Part shown: piece after piece, positions 1-18,587 of the stretch
Numbering within the stretch: position 1 is the stretch's first letter
Layout of the letters: every line of letters starts with the position of its first letter
Source of the DNA: Azolla caroliniana
Taxonomy: Eukaryota > Plantae > Polypodiophyta
Length of the DNA: 18,587 nucleotides
Direction of reading: 5' to 3'
NCBI GenBank assembly: GCA_043228905.1
Contig: JBHGNT010000640.1
Location: 1 to 18,587, forward strand
The notes under the pieces: model-generated
The model's database searches: none
What the model saw: the letters and a program-made list of their open reading frames with translations, nothing else
What the model was told of the DNA's origin: nothing
Position numbers and translations under genes: made by a program

Positions 1-484
1 AGTACGGACACCGGTCTATCTACGTTCATCGATGTTAGCACACTCGGGAGCCACACTCGTCCCGCAGTAGCCTCCGCGTGCTTAGTGTCTCGGCACTAGC
101 GCGTTCTAGTTTAATGTGCACGTGCCCGCACCCCCTACGCGCACGCGCGAGTGCGCCACATTTACCTATGTATGTATTAAATGATTATGTTGCTCGACAA
201 GCTCTCGCGCGAGGAGGAGGAGTACCCGCTACAGGTTGCGCCACAGATTGTCTGGTGAGCAATACGACACCTAGGACTAGCGCTAGACGTGTGGGAGGGT
301 GGACTAGTTGGTATGGGTCTTGGGCAAGAGTGTGTACGCAGAGACACACACGTTATGGTAATGGGAGTGGTGAGTGACATGCATGTGCTCTGATTGCATG
401 GCCATGTGTATATTAAAGGTGGAGGGAGCAAAGTCAATACAATCCATTAGGAGACAAGCCCGGGATCATGAGGACACAATCGCA

Positions 485-1270
485 ATGGCAAAGCTTACTT
501 CCGTATTCCTCATGGCCGTGATCATGCTCGCCGCGTGTACCGCGGCCAATGCTAGGTCTGTAGGGCGGGACCGTGAAGAGGAGCGACGCGATCGACGTCG
601 TGAGGGAGACATTGACGAGGAGAGGCGCGATCGACGCCGAGAGGGGGAGTGCGATGACGAGAGGCGCGAGCGACGTCGTGAGGGGTTCCTTGAGGAGGGG
701 CGCCGCTACAGAGACAACAAGAGAGACTCCGAAGAGGAAAGGGAACGTCGTAGCCGTGGTCGCGATGAGCCACGTGACGAGGAACTGAGGCGAGAGTGCG
801 GTGATTTCATCGACAAGCAGATCCGAGAGCTACAAGAGCGCTCCGAAAGAGAGGAAGGTGAACAAGGACGTCGCTCCCCATGGATCGAAAACACTCGATA
901 CTCAAGACCCTCGGAACGGTGCTGCAGGAACGTCGAACGAATCCCCGCCGAAGATCGATGCGATCGCCTACGTGATGCCTTGTATGCTGACGAGGAGGAA
1001 CGACGCAATGATGAAGGCCGACGCCATGGCCAACAATCAAGGGAACACCGTAGCTGGGAGGAAGAGGACGAGGAGCGCGAGAGAGATAGCAGCCGTGAGC
1101 GACGAGAGGGTGACGAACGCCGCCACCGCATGTCTCGACGACAAGAGGACGAACGTCAACAACGTCGCCAATTCAAGGCCGATGACGAGGAAAGAGCTCT
1201 AGGCGTCGCCGCCTCCCGCCTACTCCAACAGTGCGATCTTCGCCCTCGTGCTTGTATTCGTCGCTTCTAA
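485..1270 (+). CDS. Arg/Glu-rich 2S-albumin-like (prolamin superfamily) storage protein precursor, copy 1 (261 aa)
   Basis: ATG at 485 (gcaATGGCA) is equivalent to the start in all other copies; the 374 start in the ORF track arises from indels unique to this copy. Signal peptide MAKLTSVFLMAVIMLAACTAANA; Cys at 105, 146-147, 159, 250, 257. Confidence 0.8.
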   Translation: MAKLTSVFLMAVIMLAACTAANARSVGRDREEERRDRRREGDIDEERRDRRREGECDDERRERRREGFLEEGRRYRDNKRDSEEERERRSRGRDEPRDEELRRECGDFIDKQIRELQERSEREEGEQGRRSPWIENTRYSRPSERCCRNVERIPAEDRCDRLRDALYADEEERRNDEGRRHGQQSREHRSWEEEDEERERDSSRERREGDERRHRMSRRQEDERQQRRQFKADDEERALGVAASRLLQQCDLRPRACIRRF

Positions 1271-1369
1271 ATAGTACATAAACCTTGTTCAAATTATTCT
1301 CGTGGTCTCTCTCTAATTTCTCGTAAGTGTTTACGAACAAGTGCGTCTCCCCAATCGCGCATTACACCC

Positions 1370-1431
1370 ACACGAACGTAAACACGAGCACCAACGTCCC
1401 TCCAACACGAACGTAAACACGAGCACCAACG
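1370..1431 (+). repeat. 27-bp perfect direct repeat x2 (35-bp period) downstream of the stop codon; present in every unit
   Basis: ACACGAACGTAAACACGAGCACCAACG at 1370-1396 and 1405-1431, separated by TCCCTCCA. Confidence 0.95.
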
Positions 1432-1778
1432 CATAGAATTTGCCTATAGGGACCGCAAACCACCCAAACGGAAAAGAAAACATCAAAGCAGGACACCCAT
1501 ACCGCACACGCCACGGCAACGGCTAAGGCTAAGGTCAACTTGTACACGCGGCGAATGTGAACTTGCTTCCACACTTGCCCGATAGGACACTCCTAGTGTG
1601 GTAGTCCGGTTAGCTTTCCTTGTCGTCGTCGTTACCAACCCCTCGTCCGTCCGAACGAGCGAGTACGGACACCGGTCTATCTACGTTCATCGATGTAGCA
1701 CACTCGGGAGCCACCACTCGTCCCGCAGTAGCCTCCGCGTGCTTAGTGTCTCGGCACTAGCGCGTTCTAGTTTAATGT

Positions 1779-1786
1779 GCACGTGC
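1779..1786. promoter_or_regulatory. G-box (GCACGTGC), ~360 bp upstream of the ATG; representative copy, deleted upstream of copy 7
   Basis: CACGTG at 1780-1785 is an established bZIP/bHLH site in plant storage-protein promoters. Function here is inferred. Confidence 0.5.
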
Positions 1787-1942
1787 CCGCACACCCCTAC
1801 GCGCACGCGCGAGTGCGCACATTTACCTATGTATGTATAAATGTTATGTTGCTCGACAAGCTCTCGCGCGAGGAGGAGGAGTACCCGCTACAGGTTGCGC
1901 CCAGATTGTCTGGTGACAATACGACACCTAGGACTAGCCTAG

Positions 1943-2007
1943 ACGTGTGGGAGGGTGGACTAGTTGGTATGGGTCTTGGGCAAGAGTTGTACGCAGGACA
2001 CACACGT
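1943..2007. promoter_or_regulatory. Two ABRE-like ACGTGT cores in opposite orientation (representative copy)
   Basis: gACGTGTgg at 1943-1948 and ACACGT at 2002-2007, both just upstream of the RY element. Confidence 0.5.
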
Positions 2008-2030
2008 TATGGTAATGGGAGTGGTGAGTG

Positions 2031-2060
2031 ACATGCATGTGCTCTGATTGCATGGCCATG
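2031..2060. promoter_or_regulatory. RY/Sph element cluster (B3-domain ABI3/FUS3/LEC2-type site); representative copy, present in all 12 promoters
   Basis: Palindrome ACATGCATGT at 2031-2040 contains canonical CATGCATG. A second TGCATG at 2049-2054 overlaps the palindrome CATGGCCATG at 2051-2060. The cluster lies immediately 5' of the TATA box. Confidence 0.75.
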
Positions 2061-2062
2061 TG

Positions 2063-2073
2063 TATATATTAAA
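2063..2073 (+). promoter_or_regulatory. TATA box (representative copy)
   Basis: TATATATTAAA begins 77 bp upstream of the ATG in an otherwise GC-rich region. Confidence 0.75.
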
Positions 2074-2139
2074 GGTGGAGGGAGCAATGTCAATACAATC
2101 CATTAGGAGACAAGCACCGGGATCATAAGGACAATCGCA

Positions 2140-2925
2140 ATGGCAAAGCTTACTTCCGTATTCCTCATGGCCGTGATCATGCTCGCCGCGTGTACCGCGG
2201 CCAATGCTAGGTCTGTAGGGCGGGACCGTGAAGAGGAGCGACGCGATCGACGTCGTGAGGGAGACATTGACGAGGAGAGGCGCGATCGACGCCGAGAGGG
2301 GGAGTGCGATGACGAGAGGCGCGAGCGACGTCGTGAGGGGTTCCTTGAGGAGGGGCGCCGCTACAGAGACAACAAGAGAGACTCCGAAGAGGAAAGGGAA
2401 CGTCGTAGCCGTGGTCGCGATGAGCCACGTGACGAGGAACTGAGGCGAGAGTGCGGTGATTTCATCGACAAGCAGATCCGAGAGCTACAAGAGCGCTCCG
2501 AAAGAGAGGAAGGTGAACAAGGACGTCGCTCCCCATGGATCGAAAACACTCGATACTCAAGACCCTCGGAACGGTGCTGCAGGAACGTCGAACGAATCCC
2601 CGCCGAAGATCGATGCGATCGCCTACGTGATGCCTTGTATGCTGACGAGGAGGAACGACGCAATGATGAAGGCCGACGCCATGGCCAACAATCAAGGGAA
2701 CACCGTAGCTGGGAGGAAGAGGACGAGGAGCGCGAGAGAGATAGCAGCCGTGAGCGACGAGAGGGTGACGAACGCCGCCACCGCATGTCTCGACGACAAG
2801 AGGACGAACGTCAACAACGTCGCCAATTCAAGGCCGATGACGAGGAAAGAGCTCTAGGCGTCGCCGCCTCCCGCCTACTCCAACAGTGCGATCTTCGCCC
2901 TCGTGCTTGTATTCGTCGCTTCTAA
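2140..2925 (+). CDS. Arg/Glu-rich 2S-albumin-like storage protein precursor, copy 2 (261 aa)
   Basis: Seen: hydrophobic signal peptide ending A-N-A, plant-like start context aATGGC, and motifs ECGDFI...PSERCCRNVERIPAEDRCDRL...AASRLLQQCDLRPRAC. Knowledge: spacing CC-x9-[C]xC...L-x-x-x-C-x6-C matches the 2S albumin large subunit. The family call is by eye, with no database search. Confidence 0.82.
   Translation: MAKLTSVFLMAVIMLAACTAANARSVGRDREEERRDRRREGDIDEERRDRRREGECDDERRERRREGFLEEGRRYRDNKRDSEEERERRSRGRDEPRDEELRRECGDFIDKQIRELQERSEREEGEQGRRSPWIENTRYSRPSERCCRNVERIPAEDRCDRLRDALYADEEERRNDEGRRHGQQSREHRSWEEEDEERERDSSRERREGDERRHRMSRRQEDERQQRRQFKADDEERALGVAASRLLQQCDLRPRACIRRF
2230..2346 (+). repeat. 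Intragenic 39-nt (13-aa) repeat x3 in the N-terminal region (representative copy)
   Basis: EEERRDRRREGDI / DEERRDRRREGEC / DDERRERRREGFL at aa 31-69, followed by a degenerate EEGRR. Confidence 0.9.
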
Positions 2926-3794
2926 ATAGTACATAAACCTTGTTCAAATTATTCTCGTGGTCTCTCTCTAATTTCTCGTAAGTGTTTACGAACAAGTGCG
3001 TCTCCCCAATCGCGCATTACACCCACACGAACGTAAACACGAGCACCAACGTCCCTCCAACACGAACGTAAACACGAGCACCAACGCATAGAATTTGCCT
3101 ATAGGGACCGCAAACCACCCAAACGGAAAAGAAAACATCAAAGCAGGACACCCATACCGCACACGCCACGGCAACGGCTAAGGCTAAGGTCAACTTGTAC
3201 ACGCGGCGAATGTGAACTTGCTTCCACACTTGCCCGATAGGACACTCCTAGTGTGGTAGTCCGGTTAGCTTTCCTTGTCGTCGTCGTTACCAACCCCTCG
3301 TCCGTCCGAACGAGCGAGTACGGACACCGGTCTATCTACGTTCATCGATGTAGCACACTCGGGAGCCACCACTCGTCCCGCAGTAGCCTCCGCGTGCTTA
3401 GTGTCTCGGCACTAGCGCGTTCTAGTTTAATGTGCACGTGCCCGCACACCCCTACGCGCACGCGCGAGTGCGCACATTTACCTATGTATGTATAAATGTT
3501 ATGTTGCTCGACAAGCTCTCGCGCGAGGAGGAGGAGTACCCGCTACAGGTTGCGCCCAGATTGTCTGGTGACAATACGACACCTAGGACTAGCCTAGACG
3601 TGTGGGAGGGTGGACTAGTTGGTATGGGTCTTGGGCAAGAGTTGTACGCAGGACACACACGTTATGGTAATGGGAGTGGTGAGTGACATGCATGTGCTCT
3701 GATTGCATGGCCATGTGTATATATTAAAGGTGGAGGGAGCAATGTCAATACAATCCATTAGGAGACAAGCACCGGGATCATAAGGACAATCGCA

Positions 3795-4580
3795 ATGGCA
3801 AAGCTTACTTCCGTATTCCTCATGGCCGTGATCATGCTCGCCGCGTGTACCGCGGCCAATGCTAGGTCTGTAGGGCGGGACCGTGAAGAGGAGCGACGCG
3901 ATCGACGTCGTGAGGGAGACATTGACGAGGAGAGGCGCGATCGACGCCGAGAGGGGGAGTGCGATGACGAGAGGCGCGAGCGACGTCGTGAGGGGTTCCT
4001 TGAGGAGGGGCGCCGCTACAGAGACAACAAGAGAGACTCCGAAGAGGAAAGGGAACGTCGTAGCCGTGGTCGCGATGAGCCACGTGACGAGGAACTGAGG
4101 CGAGAGTGCGGTGATTTCATCGACAAGCAGATCCGAGAGCTACAAGAGCGCTCCGAAAGAGAGGAAGGTGAACAAGGACGTCGCTCCCCATGGATCGAAA
4201 ACACTCGATACTCAAGACCCTCGGAACGGTGCTGCAGGAACGTCGAACGAATCCCCGCCGAAGATCGATGCGATCGCCTACGTGATGCCTTGTATGCTGA
4301 CGAGGAGGAACGACGCAATGATGAAGGCCGACGCCATGGCCAACAATCAAGGGAACACCGTAGCTGGGAGGAAGAGGACGAGGAGCGCGAGAGAGATAGC
4401 AGCCGTGAGCGACGAGAGGGTGACGAACGCCGCCACCGCATGTCTCGACGACAAGAGGACGAACGTCAACAACGTCGCCAATTCAAGGCCGATGACGAGG
4501 AAAGAGCTCTAGGCGTCGCCGCCTCCCGCCTACTCCAACAGTGCGATCTTCGCCCTCGTGCTTGTATTCGTCGCTTCTAA
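3795..4580 (+). CDS. 2S-albumin-like storage protein precursor, copy 3
   Basis: Translation identical to copy 2. Confidence 0.82.
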   Translation: MAKLTSVFLMAVIMLAACTAANARSVGRDREEERRDRRREGDIDEERRDRRREGECDDERRERRREGFLEEGRRYRDNKRDSEEERERRSRGRDEPRDEELRRECGDFIDKQIRELQERSEREEGEQGRRSPWIENTRYSRPSERCCRNVERIPAEDRCDRLRDALYADEEERRNDEGRRHGQQSREHRSWEEEDEERERDSSRERREGDERRHRMSRRQEDERQQRRQFKADDEERALGVAASRLLQQCDLRPRACIRRF

Positions 4581-5449
4581 ATAGTACATAAACCTTGTTC
4601 AAATTATTCTCGTGGTCTCTCTCTAATTTCTCGTAAGTGTTTACGAACAAGTGCGTCTCCCCAATCGCGCATTACACCCACACGAACGTAAACACGAGCA
4701 CCAACGTCCCTCCAACACGAACGTAAACACGAGCACCAACGCATAGAATTTGCCTATAGGGACCGCAAACCACCCAAACGGAAAAGAAAACATCAAAGCA
4801 GGACACCCATACCGCACACGCCACGGCAACGGCTAAGGCTAAGGTCAACTTGTACACGCGGCGAATGTGAACTTGCTTCCACACTTGCCCGATAGGACAC
4901 TCCTAGTGTGGTAGTCCGGTTAGCTTTCCTTGTCGTCGTCGTTACCAACCCCTCGTCCGTCCGAACGAGCGAGTACGGACACCGGTCTATCTACGTTCAT
5001 CGATGTAGCACACTCGGGAGCCACCACTCGTCCCGCAGTAGCCTCCGCGTGCTTAGTGTCTCGGCACTAGCGCGTTCTAGTTTAATGTGCACGTGCCCGC
5101 ACACCCCTACGCGCACGCGCGAGTGCGCACATTTACCTATGTATGTATAAATGTTATGTTGCTCGACAAGCTCTCGCGCGAGGAGGAGGAGTACCCGCTA
5201 CAGGTTGCGCCCAGATTGTCTGGTGACAATACGACACCTAGGACTAGCCTAGACGTGTGGGAGGGTGGACTAGTTGGTATGGGTCTTGGGCAAGAGTTGT
5301 ACGCAGGACACACACGTTATGGTAATGGGAGTGGTGAGTGACATGCATGTGCTCTGATTGCATGGCCATGTGTATATATTAAAGGTGGAGGGAGCAATGT
5401 CAATACAATCCATTAGGAGACAAGCACCGGGATCATAAGGACAATCGCA

Positions 5450-6235
5450 ATGGCAAAGCTTACTTCCGTATTCCTCATGGCCGTGATCATGCTCGCCGCG
5501 TGTACCGCGGCCAATGCTAGGTCTGTAGGGCGGGACCGTGAAGAGGAGCGACGCGATCGACGTCGTGAGGGAGACATTGACGAGGAGAGGCGCGATCGAC
5601 GCCGAGAGGGGGAGTGCGATGACGAGAGGCGCGAGCGACGTCGTGAGGGGTTCCTTGAGGAGGGGCGCCGCTACAGAGACAACAAGAGAGACTCCGAAGA
5701 GGAAAGGGAACGTCGTAGCCGTGGTCGCGATGAGCCACGTGACGAGGAACTGAGGCGAGAGTGCGGTGATTTCATCGACAAGCAGATCCGAGAGCTACAA
5801 GAGCGCTCCGAAAGAGAGGAAGGTGAACAAGGACGTCGCTCCCCATGGATCGAAAACACTCGATACTCAAGACCCTCGGAACGGTGCTGCAGGAACGTCG
5901 AACGAATCCCCGCCGAAGATCGATGCGATCGCCTACGTGATGCCTTGTATGCTGACGAGGAGGAACGACGCAATGATGAAGGCCGACGCCATGGCCAACA
6001 ATCAAGGGAACACCGTAGCTGGGAGGAAGAGGACGAGGAGCGCGAGAGAGATAGCAGCCGTGAGCGACGAGAGGGTGACGAACGCCGCCACCGCATGTCT
6101 CGACGACAAGAGGACGAACGTCAACAACGTCGCCAATTCAAGGCCGATGACGAGGAAAGAGCTCTAGGCGTCGCCGCCTCCCGCCTACTCCAACAGTGCG
6201 ATCTTCGCCCTCGTGCTTGTATTCGTCGCTTCTAA
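5450..6235 (+). CDS. 2S-albumin-like storage protein precursor, copy 4
   Basis: Translation identical to copy 2. Confidence 0.82.
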   Translation: MAKLTSVFLMAVIMLAACTAANARSVGRDREEERRDRRREGDIDEERRDRRREGECDDERRERRREGFLEEGRRYRDNKRDSEEERERRSRGRDEPRDEELRRECGDFIDKQIRELQERSEREEGEQGRRSPWIENTRYSRPSERCCRNVERIPAEDRCDRLRDALYADEEERRNDEGRRHGQQSREHRSWEEEDEERERDSSRERREGDERRHRMSRRQEDERQQRRQFKADDEERALGVAASRLLQQCDLRPRACIRRF

Positions 6236-7104
6236 ATAGTACATAAACCTTGTTCAAATTATTCTCGTGGTCTCTCTCTAATTTCTCGTAAGTGTTTACG
6301 AACAAGTGCGTCTCCCCAATCGCGCATTACACCCACACGAACGTAAACACGAGCACCAACGTCCCTCCAACACGAACGTAAACACGAGCACCAACGCATA
6401 GAATTTGCCTATAGGGACCGCAAACCACCCAAACGGAAAAGAAAACATCAAAGCAGGACACCCATACCGCACACGCCACGGCAACGGCTAAGGCTAAGGT
6501 CAACTTGTACACGCGGCGAATGTGAACTTGCTTCCACACTTGCCCGATAGGACACTCCTAGTGTGGTAGTCCGGTTAGCTTTCCTTGTCGTCGTCGTTAC
6601 CAACCCCTCGTCCGTCCGAACGAGCGAGTACGGACACCGGTCTATCTACGTTCATCGATGTAGCACACTCGGGAGCCACCACTCGTCCCGCAGTAGCCTC
6701 CGCGTGCTTAGTGTCTCGGCACTAGCGCGTTCTAGTTTAATGTGCACGTGCCCGCACACCCCTACGCGCACGCGCGAGTGCGCACATTTACCTATGTATG
6801 TATAAATGTTATGTTGCTCGACAAGCTCTCGCGCGAGGAGGAGGAGTACCCGCTACAGGTTGCGCCCAGATTGTCTGGTGACAATACGACACCTAGGACT
6901 AGCCTAGACGTGTGGGAGGGTGGACTAGTTGGTATGGGTCTTGGGCAAGAGTTGTACGCAGGACACACACGTTATGGTAATGGGAGTGGTGAGTGACATG
7001 CATGTGCTCTGATTGCATGGCCATGTGTATATATTAAAGGTGGAGGGAGCAATGTCAATACAATCCATTAGGAGACAAGCACCGGGATCATAAGGACAAT
7101 CGCA

Positions 7105-7890
7105 ATGGCAAAGCTTACTTCCGTATTCCTCATGGCCGTGATCATGCTCGCCGCGTGTACCGCGGCCAATGCTAGGTCTGTAGGGCGGGACCGTGAAGAG
7201 GAGCGACGCGATCGACGTCGTGAGGGAGACATTGACGAGGAGAGGCGCGATCGACGCCGAGAGGGGGAGTGCGATGACGAGAGGCGCGAGCGACGTCGTG
7301 AGGGGTTCCTTGAGGAGGGGCGCCGCTACAGAGACAACAAGAGAGACTCCGAAGAGGAAAGGGAACGTCGTAGCCGTGGTCGCGATGAGCCACGTGACGA
7401 GGAACTGAGGCGAGAGTGCGGTGATTTCATCGACAAGCAGATCCGAGAGCTACAAGAGCGCTCCGAAAGAGAGGAAGGTGAACAAGGACGTCGCTCCCCA
7501 TGGATCGAAAACACTCGATACTCAAGACCCTCGGAACGGTGCTGCAGGAACGTCGAACGAATCCCCGCCGAAGATCGATGCGATCGCCTACGTGATGCCT
7601 TGTATGCTGACGAGGAGGAACGACGCAATGATGAAGGCCGACGCCATGGCCAACAATCAAGGGAACACCGTAGCTGGGAGGAAGAGGACGAGGAGCGCGA
7701 GAGAGATAGCAGCCGTGAGCGACGAGAGGGTGACGAACGCCGCCACCGCATGTCTCGACGACAAGAGGACGAACGTCAACAACGTCGCCAATTCAAGGCC
7801 GATGACGAGGAAAGAGCTCTAGGCGTCGCCGCCTCCCGCCTACTCCAACAGTGCGATCTTCGCCCTCGTGCTTGTATTCGTCGCTTCTAA
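7105..7890 (+). CDS. 2S-albumin-like storage protein precursor, copy 5
   Basis: Translation identical to copy 2. Confidence 0.82.
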   Translation: MAKLTSVFLMAVIMLAACTAANARSVGRDREEERRDRRREGDIDEERRDRRREGECDDERRERRREGFLEEGRRYRDNKRDSEEERERRSRGRDEPRDEELRRECGDFIDKQIRELQERSEREEGEQGRRSPWIENTRYSRPSERCCRNVERIPAEDRCDRLRDALYADEEERRNDEGRRHGQQSREHRSWEEEDEERERDSSRERREGDERRHRMSRRQEDERQQRRQFKADDEERALGVAASRLLQQCDLRPRACIRRF

Positions 7891-8759
7891 ATAGTACATA
7901 AACCTTGTTCAAATTATTCTCGTGGTCTCTCTCTAATTTCTCGTAAGTGTTTACGAACAAGTGCGTCTCCCCAATCGCGCATTACACCCACACGAACGTA
8001 AACACGAGCACCAACGTCCCTCCAACACGAACGTAAACACGAGCACCAACGCATAGAATTTGCCTATAGGGACCGCAAACCACCCAAACGGAAAAGAAAA
8101 CATCAAAGCAGGACACCCATACCGCACACGCCACGGCAACGGCTAAGGCTAAGGTCAACTTGTACACGCGGCGAATGTGAACTTGCTTCCACACTTGCCC
8201 GATAGGACACTCCTAGTGTGGTAGTCCGGTTAGCTTTCCTTGTCGTCGTCGTTACCAACCCCTCGTCCGTCCGAACGAGCGAGTACGGACACCGGTCTAT
8301 CTACGTTCATCGATGTAGCACACTCGGGAGCCACCACTCGTCCCGCAGTAGCCTCCGCGTGCTTAGTGTCTCGGCACTAGCGCGTTCTAGTTTAATGTGC
8401 ACGTGCCCGCACACCCCTACGCGCACGCGCGAGTGCGCACATTTACCTATGTATGTATAAATGTTATGTTGCTCGACAAGCTCTCGCGCGAGGAGGAGGA
8501 GTACCCGCTACAGGTTGCGCCCAGATTGTCTGGTGACAATACGACACCTAGGACTAGCCTAGACGTGTGGGAGGGTGGACTAGTTGGTATGGGTCTTGGG
8601 CAAGAGTTGTACGCAGGACACACACGTTATGGTAATGGGAGTGGTGAGTGACATGCATGTGCTCTGATTGCATGGCCATGTGTATATATTAAAGGTGGAG
8701 GGAGCAATGTCAATACAATCCATTAGGAGACAAGCACCGGGATCATAAGGACAATCGCA

Positions 8760-9545
8760 ATGGCAAAGCTTACTTCCGTATTCCTCATGGCCGTGATCAT
8801 GCTCGCCGCGTGTACCGCGGCCAATGCTAGGTCTGTAGGGCGGGACCGTGAAGAGGAGCGACGCGATCGACGTCGTGAGGGAGACATTGACGAGGAGAGG
8901 CGCGATCGACGCCGAGAGGGGGAGTGCGATGACGAGAGGCGCGAGCGACGTCGTGAGGGGTTCCTTGAGGAGGGGCGCCGCTACAGAGACAACAAGAGAG
9001 ACTCCGAAGAGGAAAGGGAACGTCGTAGCCGTGGTCGCGATGAGCCACGTGACGAGGAACTGAGGCGAGAGTGCGGTGATTTCATCGACAAGCAGATCCG
9101 AGAGCTACAAGAGCGCTCCGAAAGAGAGGAAGGTGAACAAGGACGTCGCTCCCCATGGATCGAAAACACTCGATACTCAAGACCCTCGGAACGGTGCTGC
9201 AGGAACGTCGAACGAATCCCCGCCGAAGATCGATGCGATCGCCTACGTGATGCCTTGTATGCTGACGAGGAGGAACGACGCAATGATGAAGGCCGACGCC
9301 ATGGCCAACAATCAAGGGAACACCGTAGCTGGGAGGAAGAGGACGAGGAGCGCGAGAGAGATAGCAGCCGTGAGCGACGAGAGGGTGACGAACGCCGCCA
9401 CCGCATGTCTCGACGACAAGAGGACGAACGTCAACAACGTCGCCAATTCAAGGCCGATGACGAGGAAAGAGCTCTAGGCGTCGCCGCCTCCCGCCTACTC
9501 CAACAGTGCGATCTTCGCCCTCGTGCTTGTATTCGTCGCTTCTAA
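8760..9545 (+). CDS. 2S-albumin-like storage protein precursor, copy 6
   Basis: Translation identical to copy 2. Confidence 0.82.
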   Translation: MAKLTSVFLMAVIMLAACTAANARSVGRDREEERRDRRREGDIDEERRDRRREGECDDERRERRREGFLEEGRRYRDNKRDSEEERERRSRGRDEPRDEELRRECGDFIDKQIRELQERSEREEGEQGRRSPWIENTRYSRPSERCCRNVERIPAEDRCDRLRDALYADEEERRNDEGRRHGQQSREHRSWEEEDEERERDSSRERREGDERRHRMSRRQEDERQQRRQFKADDEERALGVAASRLLQQCDLRPRACIRRF

Positions 9546-10389
9546 ATAGTACATAAACCTTGTTCAAATTATTCTCGTGGTCTCTCTCTAATTTCTCGTA
9601 AGTGTTTACGAACAAGTGCGTCTCCCCAATCGCGCATTACACCCACACGAACGTAAACACGAGCACCAACGTCCCTCCAACACGAACGTAAACACGAGCA
9701 CCAACGCATAGAATTTGCCTATAGGGACCGCAAACCACCCAAACGGAAAAGAAAACATCAAAGCAGGACACCCATACCGCACACGCCACGGCAACGGCTA
9801 AGGCTAAGGTCAACTTGTACACGCGGCGAATGTGAACTTGCTTCCACACTTGCCCGATAGGACACTCCTAGTGTGGTAGTCCGGTTAGCTTTCCTTGTCG
9901 TCGTCGTTACCAACCCCTCGTCCGTCCGAACGAGCGAGTACGGACACCGGTCTATCTACGTTCATCGATGTAGCACACTCGGGAGCCACCACTCGTCCCG
10001 CAGTAGCCTCCGCGTGCTTAGTGTCTCGGCACTAGCGCGTACACCCCTACGCGCACGCGCGAGTGCGCACATTTACCTATGTATGTATAAATGTTATGTT
10101 GCTCGACAAGCTCTCGCGCGAGGAGGAGGAGTACCCGCTACAGGTTGCGCCCAGATTGTCTGGTGACAATACGACACCTAGGACTAGCCTAGACGTGTGG
10201 GAGGGTGGACTAGTTGGTATGGGTCTTGGGCAAGAGTTGCACGCAGGACACACACGTTATGGTAATGGGAGTGGTGAGTGACATGCATGTGCTCTGATTG
10301 CATGGCCATGTGTATATATTAAAGGTGGAGGGAGCAATGTCAATACAATCCATTAGGAGACAAGCACCGGGATCATAAGGACAATTGCA

Positions 10390-11175
10390 ATGGCAAAGCT
10401 TACTTCCGTATTCCTCATGGCCGTGATCATGCTCGCCGCGTGTACCGCGGCCAATGCTAGGTCTGTAGGGCGGGACCGTGAAGAGGAGCGACGCGATCGA
10501 CGTCGTGAGGGAGACATTGACGAGGAGAGGCGCGATCGACGCCGAGAGGGGGAGTGCGATGACGAGAGGCGCGAGCGACGTCGTGAGGGGTTCCTTGAGG
10601 AGGGGCGCCGCTACAGAGACAACAAGAGAGACTCCGAAGAGGAAAGGGAACGTCGTAGCCGTGGTCGCGATGAGCCACGTGACGAGGAACTGAGGCGAGA
10701 GTGCGGTGATTTCATCGACAAGCAGATCCGAGAGCTACAAGAGCGCTCCGAAAGAGAGGAAGGTGAACAAGGACGTCGCTCCCCATGGATCGAAAACACT
10801 CGATACTCAAGACCCTCGGAACGGTGCTGCAGGAACGTCGAACGAATCCCCGCCGAAGATCGATGCGATCGCCTACGTGATGCCTTGTATGCTGACGAGG
10901 AGGAACGACGCAATGATGAAGGCCGACGCCATGGCCAACAATCAAGGGAACACCGTAGCTGGGAGGAAGAGGACGAGGAGCGCGAGAGAGATAGCAGCCG
11001 TGAGCGACGAGAGGGTGACGAACGCCGCCACCGCATGTCTCGACGACAAGAGGACGAACGTCAACAACGTCGCCAATTCAAGGCCGATGACGAGGAAAGA
11101 GCTCTAGGCGTCGCCGCCTCCCGCCTACTCCAACAGTGCGATCTTCGCCCTCGTGCTTGTATTCGTCGCTTCTAA
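10390..11175 (+). CDS. 2S-albumin-like storage protein precursor, copy 7 (promoter carries a 25-bp deletion)
   Basis: Translation identical to copy 2; the upstream region differs. Confidence 0.82.
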   Translation: MAKLTSVFLMAVIMLAACTAANARSVGRDREEERRDRRREGDIDEERRDRRREGECDDERRERRREGFLEEGRRYRDNKRDSEEERERRSRGRDEPRDEELRRECGDFIDKQIRELQERSEREEGEQGRRSPWIENTRYSRPSERCCRNVERIPAEDRCDRLRDALYADEEERRNDEGRRHGQQSREHRSWEEEDEERERDSSRERREGDERRHRMSRRQEDERQQRRQFKADDEERALGVAASRLLQQCDLRPRACIRRF

Positions 11176-12044
11176 ATAGTACATAAACCTTGTTCAAATT
11201 ATTCTCGTGGTCTCTCTCTAATTTCTCGTAAGTGTTTACGAACAAGTGCGTCTCCCCAATCGCGCATTACACCCACACGAACGTAAACACGAGCACCAAC
11301 GTCCCTCCAACACGAACGTAAACACGAGCACCAACGCATAGAATTTGCCTATAGGGACCGCAAACCACCCAAACGGAAAAGAAAACATCAAAGCAGGACA
11401 CCCATACCGCACACGCCACGGCAACGGCTAAGGCTAAGGTCAACTTGTACACGCGGCGAATGTGAACTTGCTTCCACACTTGCCCGATAGGACACTCCTA
11501 GTGTGGTAGTCCGGTTAGCTTTCCTTGTCGTCGTCGTTACCAACCCCTCGTCCGTCCGAACGAGCGAGTACGGACACCGGTCTATCTACGTTCATCGATG
11601 TAGCACACTCGGGAGCCACCACTCGTCCCGCAGTAGCCTCCGCGTGCTTAGTGTCTCGGCACTAGCGCGTTCTAGTTTAATGTGCACGTGCCCGCACACC
11701 CCTACGCGCACGCGCGAGTGCGCACATTTACCTATGTATGTATAAATGTTATGTTGCTCGACAAGCTCTCGCGCGAGGAGGAGGAGTACCCGCTACAGGT
11801 TGCGCCCAGATTGTCTGGTGACAATACGACACCTAGGACTAGCCTAGACGTGTGGGAGGGTGGACTAGTTGGTATGGGTCTTGGGCAAGAGTTGCACGCA
11901 GGACACACACGTTATGGTAATGGGAGTGGTGAGTGACATGCATGTGCTCTGATTGCATGGCCATGTGTATATATTAAAGGTGGAGGGAGCAATGTCAATA
12001 CAATCCATTAGGAGACAAGCACCGGGATCATAAGGACAATCGCA

Positions 12045-12830
12045 ATGGCAAAGCTTACTTCCGTATTCCTCATGGCCGTGATCATGCTCGCCGCGTGTAC
12101 CGCGGCCAATGCTAGGTCTGTAGGGCGGGACCGTGAAGAGGAGCGACGCGATCGACGTCGTGAGGGAGACATTGACGAGGAGAGGCGCGATCGACGCCGA
12201 GAGGGGGAGTGCGATGACGAGAGGCGCGAGCGACGTCGTGAGGGGTTCCTTGAGGAGGGGCGCCGCTACAGAGACAACAAGAGAGACTCCGAAGAGGAAA
12301 GGGAACGTCGTAGCCGTGGTCGCGATGAGCCACGTGACGAGGAACTGAGGCGAGAGTGCGGTGATTTCATCGACAAGCAGATCCGAGAGCTACAAGAGCG
12401 CTCCGAAAGAGAGGAAGGTGAACAAGGACGTCGCTCCCCATGGATCGAAAACACTCGATACTCAAGACCCTCGGAACGGTGCTGCAGGAACGTCGAACGA
12501 ATCCCCGCCGAAGATCGATGCGATCGCCTACGTGATGCCTTGTATGCTGACGAGGAGGAACGACGCAATGATGAAGGCCGACGCCATGGCCAACAATCAA
12601 GGGAACACCGTAGCTGGGAGGAAGAGGACGAGGAGCGCGAGAGAGATAGCAGCCGTGAGCGACGAGAGGGTGACGAACGCCGCCACCGCATGTCTCGACG
12701 ACAAGAGGACGAACGTCAACAACGTCGCCAATTCAAGGCCGATGACGAGGAAAGAGCTCTAGGCGTCGCCGCCTCCCGCCTACTCCAACAGTGCGATCTT
12801 CGCCCTCGTGCTTGTATTCGTCGCTTCTAA
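12045..12830 (+). CDS. 2S-albumin-like storage protein precursor, copy 8
   Basis: Translation identical to copy 2. Confidence 0.82.
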   Translation: MAKLTSVFLMAVIMLAACTAANARSVGRDREEERRDRRREGDIDEERRDRRREGECDDERRERRREGFLEEGRRYRDNKRDSEEERERRSRGRDEPRDEELRRECGDFIDKQIRELQERSEREEGEQGRRSPWIENTRYSRPSERCCRNVERIPAEDRCDRLRDALYADEEERRNDEGRRHGQQSREHRSWEEEDEERERDSSRERREGDERRHRMSRRQEDERQQRRQFKADDEERALGVAASRLLQQCDLRPRACIRRF

Positions 12831-13699
12831 ATAGTACATAAACCTTGTTCAAATTATTCTCGTGGTCTCTCTCTAATTTCTCGTAAGTGTTTACGAACAA
12901 GTGCGTCTCCCCAATCGCGCATTACACCCACACGAACGTAAACACGAGCACCAACGTCCCTCCAACACGAACGTAAACACGAGCACCAACGCATAGAATT
13001 TGCCTATAGGGACCGCAAACCACCCAAACGGAAAAGAAAACATCAAAGCAGGACACCCATACCGCACACGCCACGGCAACGGCTAAGGCTAAGGTCAACT
13101 TGTACACGCGGCGAATGTGAACTTGCTTCCACACTTGCCCGATAGGACACTCCTAGTGTGGTAGTCCGGTTAGCTTTCCTTGTCGTCGTCGTTACCAACC
13201 CCTCGTCCGTCCGAACGAGCGAGTACGGACACCGGTCTATCTACGTTCATCGATGTAGCACACTCGGGAGCCACCACTCGTCCCGCAGTAGCCTCCGCGT
13301 GCTTAGTGTCTCGGCACTAGCGCGTTCTAGTTTAATGTGCACGTGCCCGCACACCCCTACGCGCACGCGCCAGTGCGCACATTTACCTATGTATGTATAA
13401 ATGTTATGTTGCTCGACAAGCTCTCGCGCGAGGAGGAGGAGTACCCGCTACAGGTTGCGCCCAGATTGTCTGGTGACAATACGACACCTAGGACTAGCCT
13501 AGACGTGTGGGAGGGTGGACTAGTTGGTATGGGTCTTGGGCAAGAGTTGTACGCAGGACACACACGTTATGGTAATGGGAGTGGTGAGTGACATGCATGT
13601 GCTCTGATTGCATGGCCATGTGTATATATTAAAGGTGGAGGGAGCAATGTCAATACAATCCATTAGGAGACAAGCACCGGGATCATAAGGACAATCGCA

Positions 13700-14485
13700 A
13701 TGGCAAAGCTTACTTCCGTATTCCTCATGGCCGTGATCATGCTCGCCGCGTGTACCGCGGCCAATGCTAGGTCTGTAGGGCGGGACCGTGAAGAGGAGCG
13801 ACGCGATCGACGTCGTGAGGGAGACATTGACGAGGAGAGGCGCGATCGACGCCGAGAGGGGGAGTGCGATGACGAGAGGCGCGAGCGACGTCGTGAGGGG
13901 TTCCTTGAGGAGGGGCGCCGCTACAGAGACAACAAGAGAGACTCCGAAGAGGAAAGGGAACGTCGTAGCCGTGGTCGCGATGAGCCACGTGACGAGGAAC
14001 TGAGGCGAGAGTGCGGTGATTTCATCGACAAGCAGATCCGAGAGCTACAAGAGCGCTCCGAAAGAGAGGAAGGTGAACAAGGACGTCGCTCCCCATGGAT
14101 CGAAAACACTCGATACTCAAGACCCTCGGAACGGTGCTGCAGGAACGTCGAACGAATCCCCGCCGAAGATCGATGCGATCGCCTACGTGATGCCTTGTAT
14201 GCTGACGAGGAGGAACGACGCAATGATGAAGGCCGACGCCATGGCCAACAATCAAGGGAACACCGTAGCTGGGAGGAAGAGGACGAGGAGCGCGAGAGAG
14301 ATAGCAGCCGTGAGCGACGAGAGGGTGACGAACGCCGCCACCGCATGTCTCGACGACAAGAGGACGAACGTCAACAACGTCGCCAATTCAAGGCCGATGA
14401 CGAGGAAAGAGCTCTAGGCGTCGCCGCCTCCCGCCTACTCCAACAGTGCGATCTTCGCCCTCGTGCTTGTATTCGTCGCTTCTAA
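13700..14485 (+). CDS. 2S-albumin-like storage protein precursor, copy 9
   Basis: Translation identical to copy 2. Confidence 0.82.
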   Translation: MAKLTSVFLMAVIMLAACTAANARSVGRDREEERRDRRREGDIDEERRDRRREGECDDERRERRREGFLEEGRRYRDNKRDSEEERERRSRGRDEPRDEELRRECGDFIDKQIRELQERSEREEGEQGRRSPWIENTRYSRPSERCCRNVERIPAEDRCDRLRDALYADEEERRNDEGRRHGQQSREHRSWEEEDEERERDSSRERREGDERRHRMSRRQEDERQQRRQFKADDEERALGVAASRLLQQCDLRPRACIRRF

Positions 14486-15354
14486 ATAGTACATAAACCT
14501 TGTTCAAATTATTCTCGTGGTCTCTCTCTAATTTCTCGTAAGTGTTTACGAACAAGTGCGTCTCCCCAATCGCGCATTACACCCACACGAACGTAAACAC
14601 GAGCACCAACGTCCCTCCAACACGAACGTAAACACGAGCACCAACGCATAGAATTTGCCTATAGGGACCGCAAACCACCCAAACGGAAAAGAAAACATCA
14701 AAGCAGGACACCCATACCGCACACGCCACGGCAACGGCTAAGGCTAAGGTCAACTTGTACACGCGGCGAATGTGAACTTGCTTCCACACTTGCCCGATAG
14801 GACACTCCTAGTGTGGTAGTCCGGTTAGCTTTCCTTGTCGTCGTCGTTACCAACCCCTCGTCCGTCCGAACGAGCGAGTACGGACACCGGTCTATCTACG
14901 TTCATCGATGTAGCACACTCGGGAGCCACCACTCGTCCCGCAGTAGCCTCCGCGTGCTTAGTGTCTCGGCACTAGCGCGTTCTAGTTTAATGTGCACGTG
15001 CCCGCACACCCCTACGCGCACGCGCGAGTGCGCACATTTACCTATGTATGTATAAATGTTATGTTGCTCGACAAGCTCTCGCGCGAGGAGGAGGAGTACC
15101 CGCTACAGGTTGCGCCCAGATTGTCTGGTGACAATACGACACCTAGGACTAGCCTAGACGTGTGGGAGGGTGGACTAGTTGGTATGGGTCTTGGGCAAGA
15201 GTTGCACGCAGGACACACACGTTATGGTAATGGGAGTGGTGAGTGACATGCATGTGCTCTGATTGCATGGCCATGTGTATATATTAAAGGTGGAGGGAGC
15301 AATGTCAATACAATCCATTAGGAGACAAGCACCGGGATCATAAGGACAATCGCA

Positions 15355-16140
15355 ATGGCAAAGCTTACTTCCGTATTCCTCATGGCCGTGATCATGCTCG
15401 CCGCGTGTACCGCGGCCAATGCTAGGTCTGTAGGGCGGGACCGTGAAGAGGAGCGACGCGATCGACGTCGTGAGGGAGACATTGACGAGGAGAGGCGCGA
15501 TCGACGCCGAGAGGGGGAGTGCGATGACGAGAGGCGCGAGCGACGTCGTGAGGGGTTCCTTGAGGAGGGGCGCCGCTACAGAGACAACAAGAGAGACTCC
15601 GAAGAGGAAAGGGAACGTCGTAGCCGTGGTCGCGATGAGCCACGTGACGAGGAACTGAGGCGAGAGTGCGGTGATTTCATCGACAAGCAGATCCGAGAGC
15701 TACAAGAGCGCTCCGAAAGAGAGGAAGGTGAACAAGGACGTCGCTCCCCATGGATCGAAAACACTCGATACTCAAGACCCTCGGAACGGTGCTGCAGGAA
15801 CGTCGAACGAATCCCCGCCGAAGATCGATGCGATCGCCTACGTGATGCCTTGTATGCTGACGAGGAGGAACGACGCAATGATGAAGGCCGACGCCATGGC
15901 CAACAATCAAGGGAACACCGTAGCTGGGAGGAAGAGGACGAGGAGCGCGAGAGAGATAGCAGCCGTGAGCGACGAGAGGGTGACGAACGCCGCCACCGCA
16001 TGTCTCGACGACAAGAGGACGAACGTCAACAACGTCGCCAATTCAAGGCCGATGACGAGGAAAGAGCTCTAGGCGTCGCCGCCTCCCGCCTACTCCAACA
16101 GTGCGATCTTCGCCCTCGTGCTTGTATTCGTCGCTTCTAA
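15355..16140 (+). CDS. 2S-albumin-like storage protein precursor, copy 10
   Basis: Translation identical to copy 2. Confidence 0.82.
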   Translation: MAKLTSVFLMAVIMLAACTAANARSVGRDREEERRDRRREGDIDEERRDRRREGECDDERRERRREGFLEEGRRYRDNKRDSEEERERRSRGRDEPRDEELRRECGDFIDKQIRELQERSEREEGEQGRRSPWIENTRYSRPSERCCRNVERIPAEDRCDRLRDALYADEEERRNDEGRRHGQQSREHRSWEEEDEERERDSSRERREGDERRHRMSRRQEDERQQRRQFKADDEERALGVAASRLLQQCDLRPRACIRRF

Positions 16141-17009
16141 ATAGTACATAAACCTTGTTCAAATTATTCTCGTGGTCTCTCTCTAATTTCTCGTAAGTGT
16201 TTACGAACAAGTGCGTCTCCCCAATCGCGCATTACACCCACACGAACGTAAACACGAGCACCAACGTCCCTCCAACACGAACGTAAACACGAGCACCAAC
16301 GCATAGAATTTGCCTATAGGGACCGCAAACCACCCAAACGGAAAAGAAAACATCAAAGCAGGACACCCATACCGCACACGCCACGGCAACGGCTAAGGCT
16401 AAGGTCAACTTGTACACGCGGCGAATGTGAACTTGCTTCCACACTTGCCCGATAGGACACTCCTAGTGTGGTAGTCCGGTTAGCTTTCCTTGTCGTCGTC
16501 GTTACCAACCCCTCGTCCGTCCGAACGAGCGAGTACGGACACCGGTCTATCTACGTTCATCGATGTAGCACACTCGGGAGCCACCACTCGTCCCGCAGTA
16601 GCCTCCGCGTGCTTAGTGTCTCGGCACTAGCGCGTTCTAGTTTAATGTGCACGTGCCCGCACACCCCTACGCGCACGCGCGAGTGCGCACATTTACCTAT
16701 GTATGTATAAATGTTATGTTGCTCGACAAGCTCTCGCGCGAGGAGGAGGAGTACCCGCTACAGGTTGCGCCCAGATTGTCTGGTGACAATACGACACCTA
16801 GGACTAGCCTAGACGTGTGGGAGGGTGGACTAGTTGGTATGGGTCTTGGGCAAGAGTTGCACGCAGGACACACACGTTATGGTAATGGGAGTGGTGAGTG
16901 ACATGCATGTGCTCTGATTGCATGGCCATGTGTATATATTAAAGGTGGAGGGAGCAATGTCAATACAATCCATTAGGAGACAAGCACCGGGATCATAAGG
17001 ACAATCGCA

Positions 17010-17795
17010 ATGGCAAAGCTTACTTCCGTATTCCTCATGGCCGTGATCATGCTCGCCGCGTGTACCGCGGCCAATGCTAGGTCTGTAGGGCGGGACCGTG
17101 AAGAGGAGCGACGCGATCGACGTCGTGAGGGAGACATTGACGAGGAGAGGCGCGATCGACGCCGAGAGGGGGAGTGCGATGACGAGAGGCGCGAGCGACG
17201 TCGTGAGGGGTTCCTTGAGGAGGGGCGCCGCTACAGAGACAACAAGAGAGACTCCGAAGAGGAAAGGGAACGTCGTAGCCGTGGTCGCGATGAGCCACGT
17301 GACGAGGAACTGAGGCGAGAGTGCGGTGATTTCATCGACAAGCAGATCCGAGAGCTACAAGAGCGCTCCGAAAGAGAGGAAGGTGAACAAGGACGTCGCT
17401 CCCCATGGATCGAAAACACTCGATACTCAAGACCCTCGGAACGGTGCTGCAGGAACGTCGAACGAATCCCCGCCGAAGATCGATGCGATCGCCTACGTGA
17501 TGCCTTGTATGCTGACGAGGAGGAACGACGCAATGATGAAGGCCGACGCCATGGCCAACAATCAAGGGAACACCGTAGCTGGGAGGAAGAGGACGAGGAG
17601 CGCGAGAGAGATAGCAGCCGTGAGCGACGAGAGGGTGACGAACGCCGCCACCGCATGTCTCGACGACAAGAGGACGAACGTCAACAACGTCGCCAATTCA
17701 AGGCCGATGACGAGGAAAGAGCTCTAGGCGTCGCCGCCTCCCGCCTACTCCAACAGTGCGATCTTCGCCCTCGTGCTTGTATTCGTCGCTTCTAA
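17010..17795 (+). CDS. 2S-albumin-like storage protein precursor, copy 11
   Basis: Translation identical to copy 2. Confidence 0.82.
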   Translation: MAKLTSVFLMAVIMLAACTAANARSVGRDREEERRDRRREGDIDEERRDRRREGECDDERRERRREGFLEEGRRYRDNKRDSEEERERRSRGRDEPRDEELRRECGDFIDKQIRELQERSEREEGEQGRRSPWIENTRYSRPSERCCRNVERIPAEDRCDRLRDALYADEEERRNDEGRRHGQQSREHRSWEEEDEERERDSSRERREGDERRHRMSRRQEDERQQRRQFKADDEERALGVAASRLLQQCDLRPRACIRRF

Positions 17796-18587
17796 ATAGT
17801 ACATAAACCTTGTTCAAATTATTCTCGTGGTCTCTCTCTAATTTCTCGTAAGTGTTTACGAACAAGTGCGTCTCCCCAATCGCGCATTACACCCACACGA
17901 ACGTAAACACGAGCACCAACGTCCCTCCAACACGAACGTAAACACGAGCACCAACGCATAGAATTTGCCTATAGGGACCGCAAACCACCCAAACGGAAAA
18001 GAAAACATCAAAGCAGGACACCCATACCGCACACGCCACGGCAACGGCTAAGGCTAAGGTCAACTTGTACACGCGGCGAATGTGAACTTGCTTCCACACT
18101 TGCCCGATAGGACACTCCTAGTGTGGTAGTCCGGTTAGCTTTCCTTGTCGTCGTCGTTACCAACCCCTCGTCCGTCCGAACGAGCGAGTACGGACACCGG
18201 TCTATCTACGTTCATCGATGTAGCACACTCGGGAGCCACCACTCGTCCCGCAGTAGCCTCCGCGTGCTTAGTGTCTCGGCACTAGCGCGTTCTAGTTTAA
18301 TGTGCACGTGCCCGCACACCCCTACGCGCACGCGCGAGTGCGCACATTTACCTATGTATGTATAAATGTTATGTTGCTCGACAAGCTCTCGCGCGAGGAG
18401 GAGGAGTACCCGCTACAGGTTGCGCCCAGATTGTCTGGTGACAATACGACACCTAGGACTAGCCTAGACGTGTGGGAGGGTGGACTAGTTGGTATGGGTC
18501 TTGGGCAAGAGTTGTACGCAGGACACACACGTTATGGTAATGGGAGTGGTGAGTGACATGCATGTGCTCTGATTGCATGGCCATGTG
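17796..18587 (+). other. 3' region of copy 11 and promoter of a 12th copy, cut by the window edge just before the TATA box
   Basis: The sequence ends ...acatgcatgtgctctgattgcatggccatgtg, equivalent to position 2062 of the array. Confidence 0.95.

Follow-up and report, generated by a model that had tools for sequence, protein, structure and literature searches.

A head-to-tail array of identical intronless genes for a putative arginine-rich, 2S-albumin-like plant protein

The 18,587-nucleotide stretch of DNA analysed here (contig JBHGNT010000640.1; "the window" below means this whole stretch) is one head-to-tail tandem array throughout, in which a gene for a candidate storage protein recurs together with its flanking regions. 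The account that we favour, with moderate confidence, is a native, long-lived array of a functional intronless plant gene that is homogenised by concerted evolution and whose product is likely a nitrogen reserve. In each unit, a maturation-type promoter in which a distal G-box precedes two RY cores and a TATA box would drive an open reading frame (ORF) of 786 bp, followed by a conserved 3′ block and a fast-evolving spacer, and unequal crossing-over and/or gene conversion between units would keep the copies alike. Low diversity within the array, diverged unit types in other samples and purifying selection together form the textbook mark of concerted evolution, and they argue against a dead satellite, an artefact or a single burst of amplification.

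Layout of the array and its cassette

The window contains 11 complete coding sequences (CDS) of 786 bp, all on the plus strand, at 485..1270, 2140..2925 (copy 2, the reference copy), 3795..4580, 5450..6235, 7105..7890, 8760..9545, 10390..11175 (copy 7), 12045..12830, 13700..14485, 15355..16140 and 17010..17795, the first coordinate of each interval being the start codon. All 11 are identical at the nucleotide level, and every ORF translates to the same protein of 261 residues followed by a stop. Successive start codons lie 1,655 bp apart, with the sole exception of one 1,630-bp step (8760 to 10390), and the gene-to-gene spacer is 869 bp. A HindIII site (AAGCTT) is present at +7 of every ATG.

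The uniformity of the units extends well beyond the genes. An alignment of the units with MAFFT has no variable column in the CDS and none in the first ~425 bp of the spacer. The ten full units differ at three single-nucleotide variant (SNV) sites and by one 25-bp deletion, all in the spacer, and their mean pairwise SNV diversity (π) is 5.7e-4, which is ~350-fold below the synonymous distance (~0.2) to the other unit types described below. Measurement thus agrees with a preliminary description of the window, which had proposed at least 11 tandem copies with a 1,655-bp period and about 870 bp between genes, four variant sites, near-zero synonymous divergence among copies, a homogeneity reaching into the spacer and a HindIII site close to the ATG.

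Two of the SNVs in the full units are private, G>C at 13371 and C>T at 10386. The third is a T/C spacer site that is T in units 1-5, which are identical across 8,275 bp, and C at 10240, 11895, 15205 and 16860. Over units 6-11 (10240, 11895, 13550, 15205, 16860 and 18515) it reads C-C-T, C-C-T, an order that hints at a three-unit higher-order repeat arising from out-of-register exchange. The deletion lies at 10041 (compare 3421-3445) and gives the 1,630-bp unit.

Partial units are found at both ends, as the window begins and stops mid-unit. The right end is clean; the last partial spacer (17796..18587, plus strand) matches the other units and stops 78 bp short of the next expected ATG. The left end (1..484, plus strand), comprising the distal spacer and promoter of the first gene, is noisy, with 5 substitutions and 16 indel columns relative to the other units. 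Nearly all of these differences are unique single-base insertions, and four related unit types agree with the remaining units, so that positions 1-484 are probably an unpolished contig end and not a diverged edge copy. Read in this way, the window may correspond to a complete small contig. The array had been described as running past both edges; the noisy left end may instead be a contig terminus.

Every unit carries the same upstream arrangement, with CATGCATG at −108 (3687 in the representative copy), TGCATG at −91 (3704) and a TATA-like box at −77 (3718). Within the proximal promoter and 5′ leader (3660..3794, plus strand), the block from about −135 to −35 is nearly invariant across four array types; the two RY cores and the TATA box, themselves invariant in these types, fall inside it, as does the leader. 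RY elements near a TATA box are a hallmark of seed-maturation genes bound by B3 factors of the ABI3/FUS3/LEC2 type. In the window, the RY core CATGCA lies near the TATA box and is conserved among relatives, and binding of such a factor is predicted. In one fern, maturing sporangia express homologues of ABI3 and LEC2 (PMC5379062). Further upstream, a distal G-box (CACGTG at −360; 3435..3440, plus strand) is kept in three of the four array types. The 25-bp deletion shortens the spacer upstream of copy 7 and removes this G-box from its promoter, and regulation of that copy may differ.

The ORF is uninterrupted from the signal peptide through the conserved C-terminus, and the gene is therefore without an intron. 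It is followed by ~110 nt that are conserved among relatives (2926..3035, plus strand), a probable 3′ untranslated region in which no canonical AATAAA was found. The complete cassette of promoter, intronless CDS and 3′ region that had been proposed for each unit is thereby upheld. Between the conserved blocks lies the variable spacer middle (3036..3434, plus strand), and an 18-bp imperfect repeat is found at 3026-3086 on the same strand.

Other candidate elements were set aside. A search of two units against Rfam gave no match, and a scan of the window for sigma-70 promoters and terminators returned output at chance level that is irrelevant to a plant gene. ORFs of 80-141 residues in other frames, in the spacer and on the minus strand were rejected as genes, being by-products of the repeated Arg/Glu codon composition; two that recur in every unit are a 141-residue Ser/Arg-rich antisense ORF (2361-2786, minus strand) and a 133-residue ORF in another plus frame. 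Over 2140-3794, observed/expected CpG ratios of 1.36 (CDS) and 1.12 (spacer) were obtained, and the array, its repeat nature notwithstanding, is free of CpG depletion of the kind expected in long-methylated repeats.

Related units in other samples and concerted evolution

Relatives of the window protein are few. Searches of 5.8 billion clusters (by word index) and 1.84 billion representatives (by full HMMER, phmmer) gave only three, P0001, P0002 and P0003, none of them named and none with a taxon, and the exact window protein was absent from a 15-billion-sequence collection. P0001 is a diverged relative and P0003 a 45-residue fragment, while P0002 has 246 residues as called and its true start lies further upstream, giving 267 residues with a signal peptide. 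With three unnamed hits among billions of proteins, the family is prone to be missed or repeat-masked in genome annotations.

Following the protein hits, together with one scan of metagenome contigs, led to array contigs. Ten independent short contigs from ten samples and two data sources contain a CDS end, a spacer and the next CDS start. One of them, L005 (ENA ERZ1034427), aligns with the window unit over 2,042 bases without a single mismatch, and a 417-bp overlap of its ends gives a period of 1,640 bp. By this identity L005 is of the same species as the window, and it is an independent confirmation of the head-to-tail junction. L005 (1475-2057) also carries an in-frame 15-bp deletion that removes five codons from the third Arg/Glu repeat (compare 640-700 of the window) and is flanked by the direct repeat GCGA. 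None of the 11 window copies has this deletion, so unit variants exist among individuals or elsewhere in the array.

Contigs L003, L004, L006, L007 and L009-L012, from eight further samples, belong to three additional types of unit, whose periods are 1,650, 1,730 and 1,857 bp. Contigs L003, L006 and L007 wrap around their ends, and L004 and L009-L012 span CDS, spacer and CDS; in L006 the CDS itself spans the contig ends and was read through there, the contiguous piece alone being used in some analyses. The resulting four types may represent different species or strains, or distinct arrays within a single genome. The five ORFs that were reconstructed are all intact (256-295 residues), and length varies only in a charged insert and through the five-codon deletion. 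Between types, the synonymous distance (dS) is 0.06-0.34 and the ratio of non-synonymous to synonymous distance (dN/dS) 0.10-0.32, with 29-52 synonymous and 13-52 non-synonymous differences. Intact ORFs at these ratios point to a functional gene, and the selection on the protein is purifying.

Between types, the spacers can be aligned block by block over their whole length, from the 3′ region to the promoter. Their identity over aligned columns is only 62-73%, gaps occupy 15-26% of columns, and the closest pair reaches 93%. Head-to-tail junctions and homologous spacers are present in all four types, so that the tandem state is common to types that have diverged. Shared unit architecture and block-aligned spacers indicate one ancestral tandem unit, and hence a tandem state that predates the split. 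Within the window, by comparison, π is 5.7e-4 with the spacer included. These values fit better with an old array, kept uniform within each type by concerted evolution, than with a one-off recent burst. The preliminary description had left the choice between very recent amplification and ongoing concerted evolution; the existence of four diverged head-to-tail types favours the latter and speaks against a single recent burst.

Copy number beyond the window can be bracketed only loosely. K-mer coverages assigned by SPAdes to three array contigs are 657x, 596x and 441x, and could reflect about ten copies or several hundred. The 1.5x coverage of two diverged relatives, L001 and L008, was rejected as a single-copy baseline, because L008 is from a different, AT-rich plant and the samples differ.

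These more distant relatives extend the family. L002 (414-1214) and L008 (138-953) contain the same gene, from a plant with AT-rich flanks, for a 267-residue relative with 45% protein identity, 20% Arg and 6.6% His. It retains six cysteines, the motifs S-R-P-S-E-R-C-C and L-L-Q-Q-C and the RY/TATA spacing; in L002, TGCATG is at −95 and TATAAA at −72, compared with −91 and −77 in the window, and two further RY cores and a G-box lie within 200 bp. At least two well-separated taxa thus have members of the family. L001 (106-928), covered at 1.5x, forms a branch of its own. It shows 67-70% DNA identity in the N-terminal part and has the same signal peptide, numerous additional cysteines, repeated Arg/Glu/His modules and what is probably a frameshift.

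The encoded protein and its likely role

The protein begins with a predicted signal peptide (residues 1-23) that is hydrophobic and ends in A-N-A. The mature chain is highly charged and nearly balanced, consisting of 28.6% Arg, 20.6% Glu and 10.5% Asp (Asp plus Glu, 31%), with 71 basic residues against 74 acidic ones and a mean nitrogen content of ~1.97 atoms per residue. Residues 24-95 are made up of Arg/Glu repeats, including three of 13 residues encoded by a 39-bp DNA repeat. An albumin-like core follows (residues 96-172 and 239-261, the latter ending in the conserved C-terminus), interrupted by a 66-residue charged insert (residues 173-238). The 68 Arg codons of the CDS comprise 53 CGT, CGC or CGA, two CGG and 13 AGA or AGG.

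Six cysteines are invariant (105, 146, 147, 159, 250 and 257), in the order C...CC...C...C...C, and a seventh, Cys 56, is not conserved. Angiosperm 2S albumins carry a signal peptide, their precursor is split after Asn into a small and a large chain, and a variable loop lies between helices 3 and 4. The charged insert of the window protein occupies the position of this loop. In addition, Asn 134 (I-E-N) precedes the large-chain-like part and is kept in all array types, and L002 likewise has an Asn ahead of its large-chain-like part. The eight-cysteine skeleton C...C...CC...CxC...C...C is incomplete, six of the eight being present. Alignment to cereal inhibitors places an Asp at the first cysteine of the CxC motif, and by position it is Cys1 and Cys5 that are absent. 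In 2S albumins these two form one disulfide, so that a whole bridge would have been lost and the scaffold left unbroken. The six cysteines that remain are predicted to pair as 105-146, 147-250 and 159-257.

Several searches point to the prolamin superfamily. The window protein scores 21.7 bits against Pfam PF00234, just reaching the curated cut-off of 21.7, and all five family members scanned match this model at E up to 1. A profile search of the PDB returned chains of the superfamily only (the ragi, barley and maize inhibitors, Mo-CBP4 and a 2S albumin), with a best E of 0.045. In the ESM Atlas, the clusters of Globulin 1, 2S albumin and gamma-hordein come nearest, with scores of 0.77-0.82 that the tool grades as leads only.

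Structural comparison hints, at low scores, at the same neighbourhood. A model of the core, built from a five-sequence alignment, has a predicted template modelling score (pTM) of 0.56 and a mean predicted local distance difference test score (pLDDT) of 67.5. Its top match among 48,161 chains is the Moringa 2S albumin 5dom (Z = 6.4, below what the tool itself considers safe for helical proteins; root-mean-square deviation = 2.9 Å, 83/90 residues), followed by the wheat 0.19 amylase inhibitor (1hss, Z = 5.8). The top 25 also include nsLTP2, DIR1, soybean hydrophobic protein, Mo-CBP3-4 and RBI. All 11 Foldseek matches in the PDB are members of the superfamily and all are weak, none having an E below 2. 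An AlphaFold prediction of the whole protein from the single sequence gave three long helices at a pTM of 0.25 and was discarded as useless for fold assignment. Pfam, the PDB profile, the ESM Atlas and the structure match each support the 2S-albumin-like protein of the preliminary description, which we regard, at the margin of what these scores allow, as a very divergent, enlarged member of the prolamin superfamily.

In the mechanism that we propose, B3 factors of the ABI3/LEC2 type and bZIP factors would drive transcription during spore or seed maturation. The product would enter the secretory pathway and endoplasmic reticulum with its six-cysteine helical core embedded in charge-balanced Arg/Glu/Asp segments, be cleaved after conserved Asn residues such as Asn 134 (with Asn 77 another candidate site for a chain end), and be deposited in the storage vacuole as a reserve of arginine, and thus of nitrogen, to be consumed at germination. 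Many identical copies would raise output within a short developmental window. The family assignment by itself points no further than to a plant. If the host is a fern, "seed" may be the wrong organ and spores the likely site; PMC4973428 cites Rodin & Rask 1990 and Shutov 1998 for the presence of 2S albumins and globulins in fern spores.

Several points weigh against a homogenised array of storage genes. Family membership is marginal, with a Pfam score at the cut-off, a best profile E of 0.045, Foldseek E of at least 2 and a mean pLDDT of 67.5, to which the low Z score of the best structural match and the two missing cysteines of the skeleton must be added. The putative expression, tissue and storage role are deduced from promoter motifs and composition. 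The Arg/Glu-rich N-terminal 72 residues (2209-2424) have a dN/dS of 0.05-0.16 between types, with 5-12 synonymous changes; they are as constrained as the cysteine core, beyond the needs of a mere amino-acid depot. Such strong purifying selection on residues 24-95 is unexpected for a depot or for a discarded propeptide. As to the array, homogeneity within it is seen directly in the window only, the other arrays being collapsed short-read contigs, and the copy number established is at least 11, in the window.

The near-invariance of the N-terminal residues suggests a sequence-specific function, and it is this observation that makes the strongest rival a serious one, though clearly the less probable: the array is real, and the main job of the protein is not nitrogen storage. 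The product could instead be a defence protein, a precursor of antimicrobial peptides or a desiccation-protective secretory polyampholyte, or it could have such a role in addition to storage. Several 2S albumins act in defence or as antimicrobial-peptide precursors. The closest structures include Mo-CBP3-4 and Mo-CBP4, which are antifungal, chitin-binding 2S albumins (PMC4366206). The three 13-residue repeats and the conserved Asn could mark the release of multiple peptides, and AlphaFold without an alignment renders the charged segments as long single helices. However, the RY and TATA elements, extreme Arg content, charge balance and free length of the insert (256-295 residues in total) are typical of reserve proteins, and 2S albumins can combine storage and defence.

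Storage in a dosage-amplified array, as favoured here, admits an extension that we consider rather improbable. The array would be one half of a dosage-matched system, in which hundreds of copies are accompanied by co-amplified arrays of tRNA-Arg (ACG and UCG) in the same genome. These two tRNA species would read 55 of the 68 Arg codons of the window gene. If this were true, gene dose and decoding capacity would both be scaled for a short burst of reserve synthesis, and a seed-free plant would be using a "seed" maturation promoter older than seeds.

Other accounts of the uniformity and comparison with known systems

That the copies are alike through youth alone, following one very recent amplification burst, is an improbable account, if slightly less so than those that follow. 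Near-zero divergence and five consecutive, fully identical units are compatible with it, as is an observed/expected CpG ratio above 1, without sign of methylation decay. Against it stand the four diverged head-to-tail types (dS 0.06-0.34; periods of 1,640-1,857 bp), three of them at a k-mer coverage of 441-657x, and spacers that align in blocks throughout without separate amplification junctions. The C-C-T, C-C-T pattern, moreover, is as expected from out-of-register exchange of three units.

An assembly or rolling-circle artefact that multiplied a low-copy gene is very improbable. The window is pure repeat and possibly a whole unplaced contig, with a left end as noisy as raw long reads, and the contigs with overlapping ends would also be compatible with a circle. 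Yet the units can be told apart by variants whose order is not random (the 25-bp deletion, one SNV that is shared and two that are private), and the ten independent contigs from two data sources have the same CDS-spacer-CDS junction. Least probable of all is a gene-derived non-coding satellite with ORFs intact merely because they are young, for although its period and uniformity are satellite-like, every ORF is intact, synonymous differences between types number 29-52 against 13-52 non-synonymous ones, and the promoter and 3′ blocks are conserved where the remaining spacer is not.

A long-lived array homogenised by concerted evolution combines features that are, one by one, already known: tandem storage-protein genes, RY promoters, fern spore albumins and concerted evolution of gene arrays. 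A letter-identical, satellite-like array of a whole storage-type cassette transcribed by RNA polymerase II (Pol II), persisting to a dS of 0.34, was not found described in the searchable literature, nor was such an array found in the literature on fern 2S-albumin genes, Ceratopteris 2S albumin or arginine-rich fern spore proteins. A satellite-like array of an entire Pol II cassette is unusual in plants, the storage genes of seed plants forming small diverged clusters, and the window would show, as a clean natural example, a protein-coding gene and its promoter evolving in concert.

If the host is a fern, the 2S albumins of fern spores, which are also of the 2S-albumin type and come from a seed-free vascular plant, would be the natural functional counterpart; no report of a gene array for a fern spore 2S albumin was found in the searchable literature. 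The array would then bear on the origin of the seed programme, and the RY/TATA promoter of a 2S-albumin-like gene, with its spacing shared by relatives only 45% identical, would make an early role of the ABI3/LEC2-RY module in the deposition of spore reserves directly testable.

Arabidopsis At2S1-4 and the Brassica napins are intronless tandem genes with RY promoters under ABI3/FUS3/LEC2. Those clusters consist of a few diverged paralogues with unlike spacers, whereas the window contains at least 11 identical CDS with near-identical spacers, and its protein is about twice as long, contains 28.6% Arg and is missing one canonical disulfide (Cys1/Cys5). The best structural matches of the core model are 2S albumins and chitin-binding proteins of Moringa oleifera (5dom, 6vj0 and 6s3f; Z scores of 6.4 and 4.0, Foldseek ranks 1, 2 and 9). 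These are likewise basic, Arg-rich seed albumins, but identity to the window protein is only 13-31% over a short core and, unlike it, they have all eight cysteines and no long charged insertions.

In its organisation, the array resembles other systems. Concerted tandem arrays include ribosomal DNA (rDNA), 5S rDNA, animal histone repeats and trypanosomatid tubulin. The rDNA, histone and tubulin arrays are built, like the window, from head-to-tail units of whole genes with spacers that are uniform within an array and diverge fast between lineages, and they provide high dosage for bulk production. Unlike those arrays, the window is built from a gene of the Pol II class that encodes a secreted plant protein, one that appears to be stage-specific.

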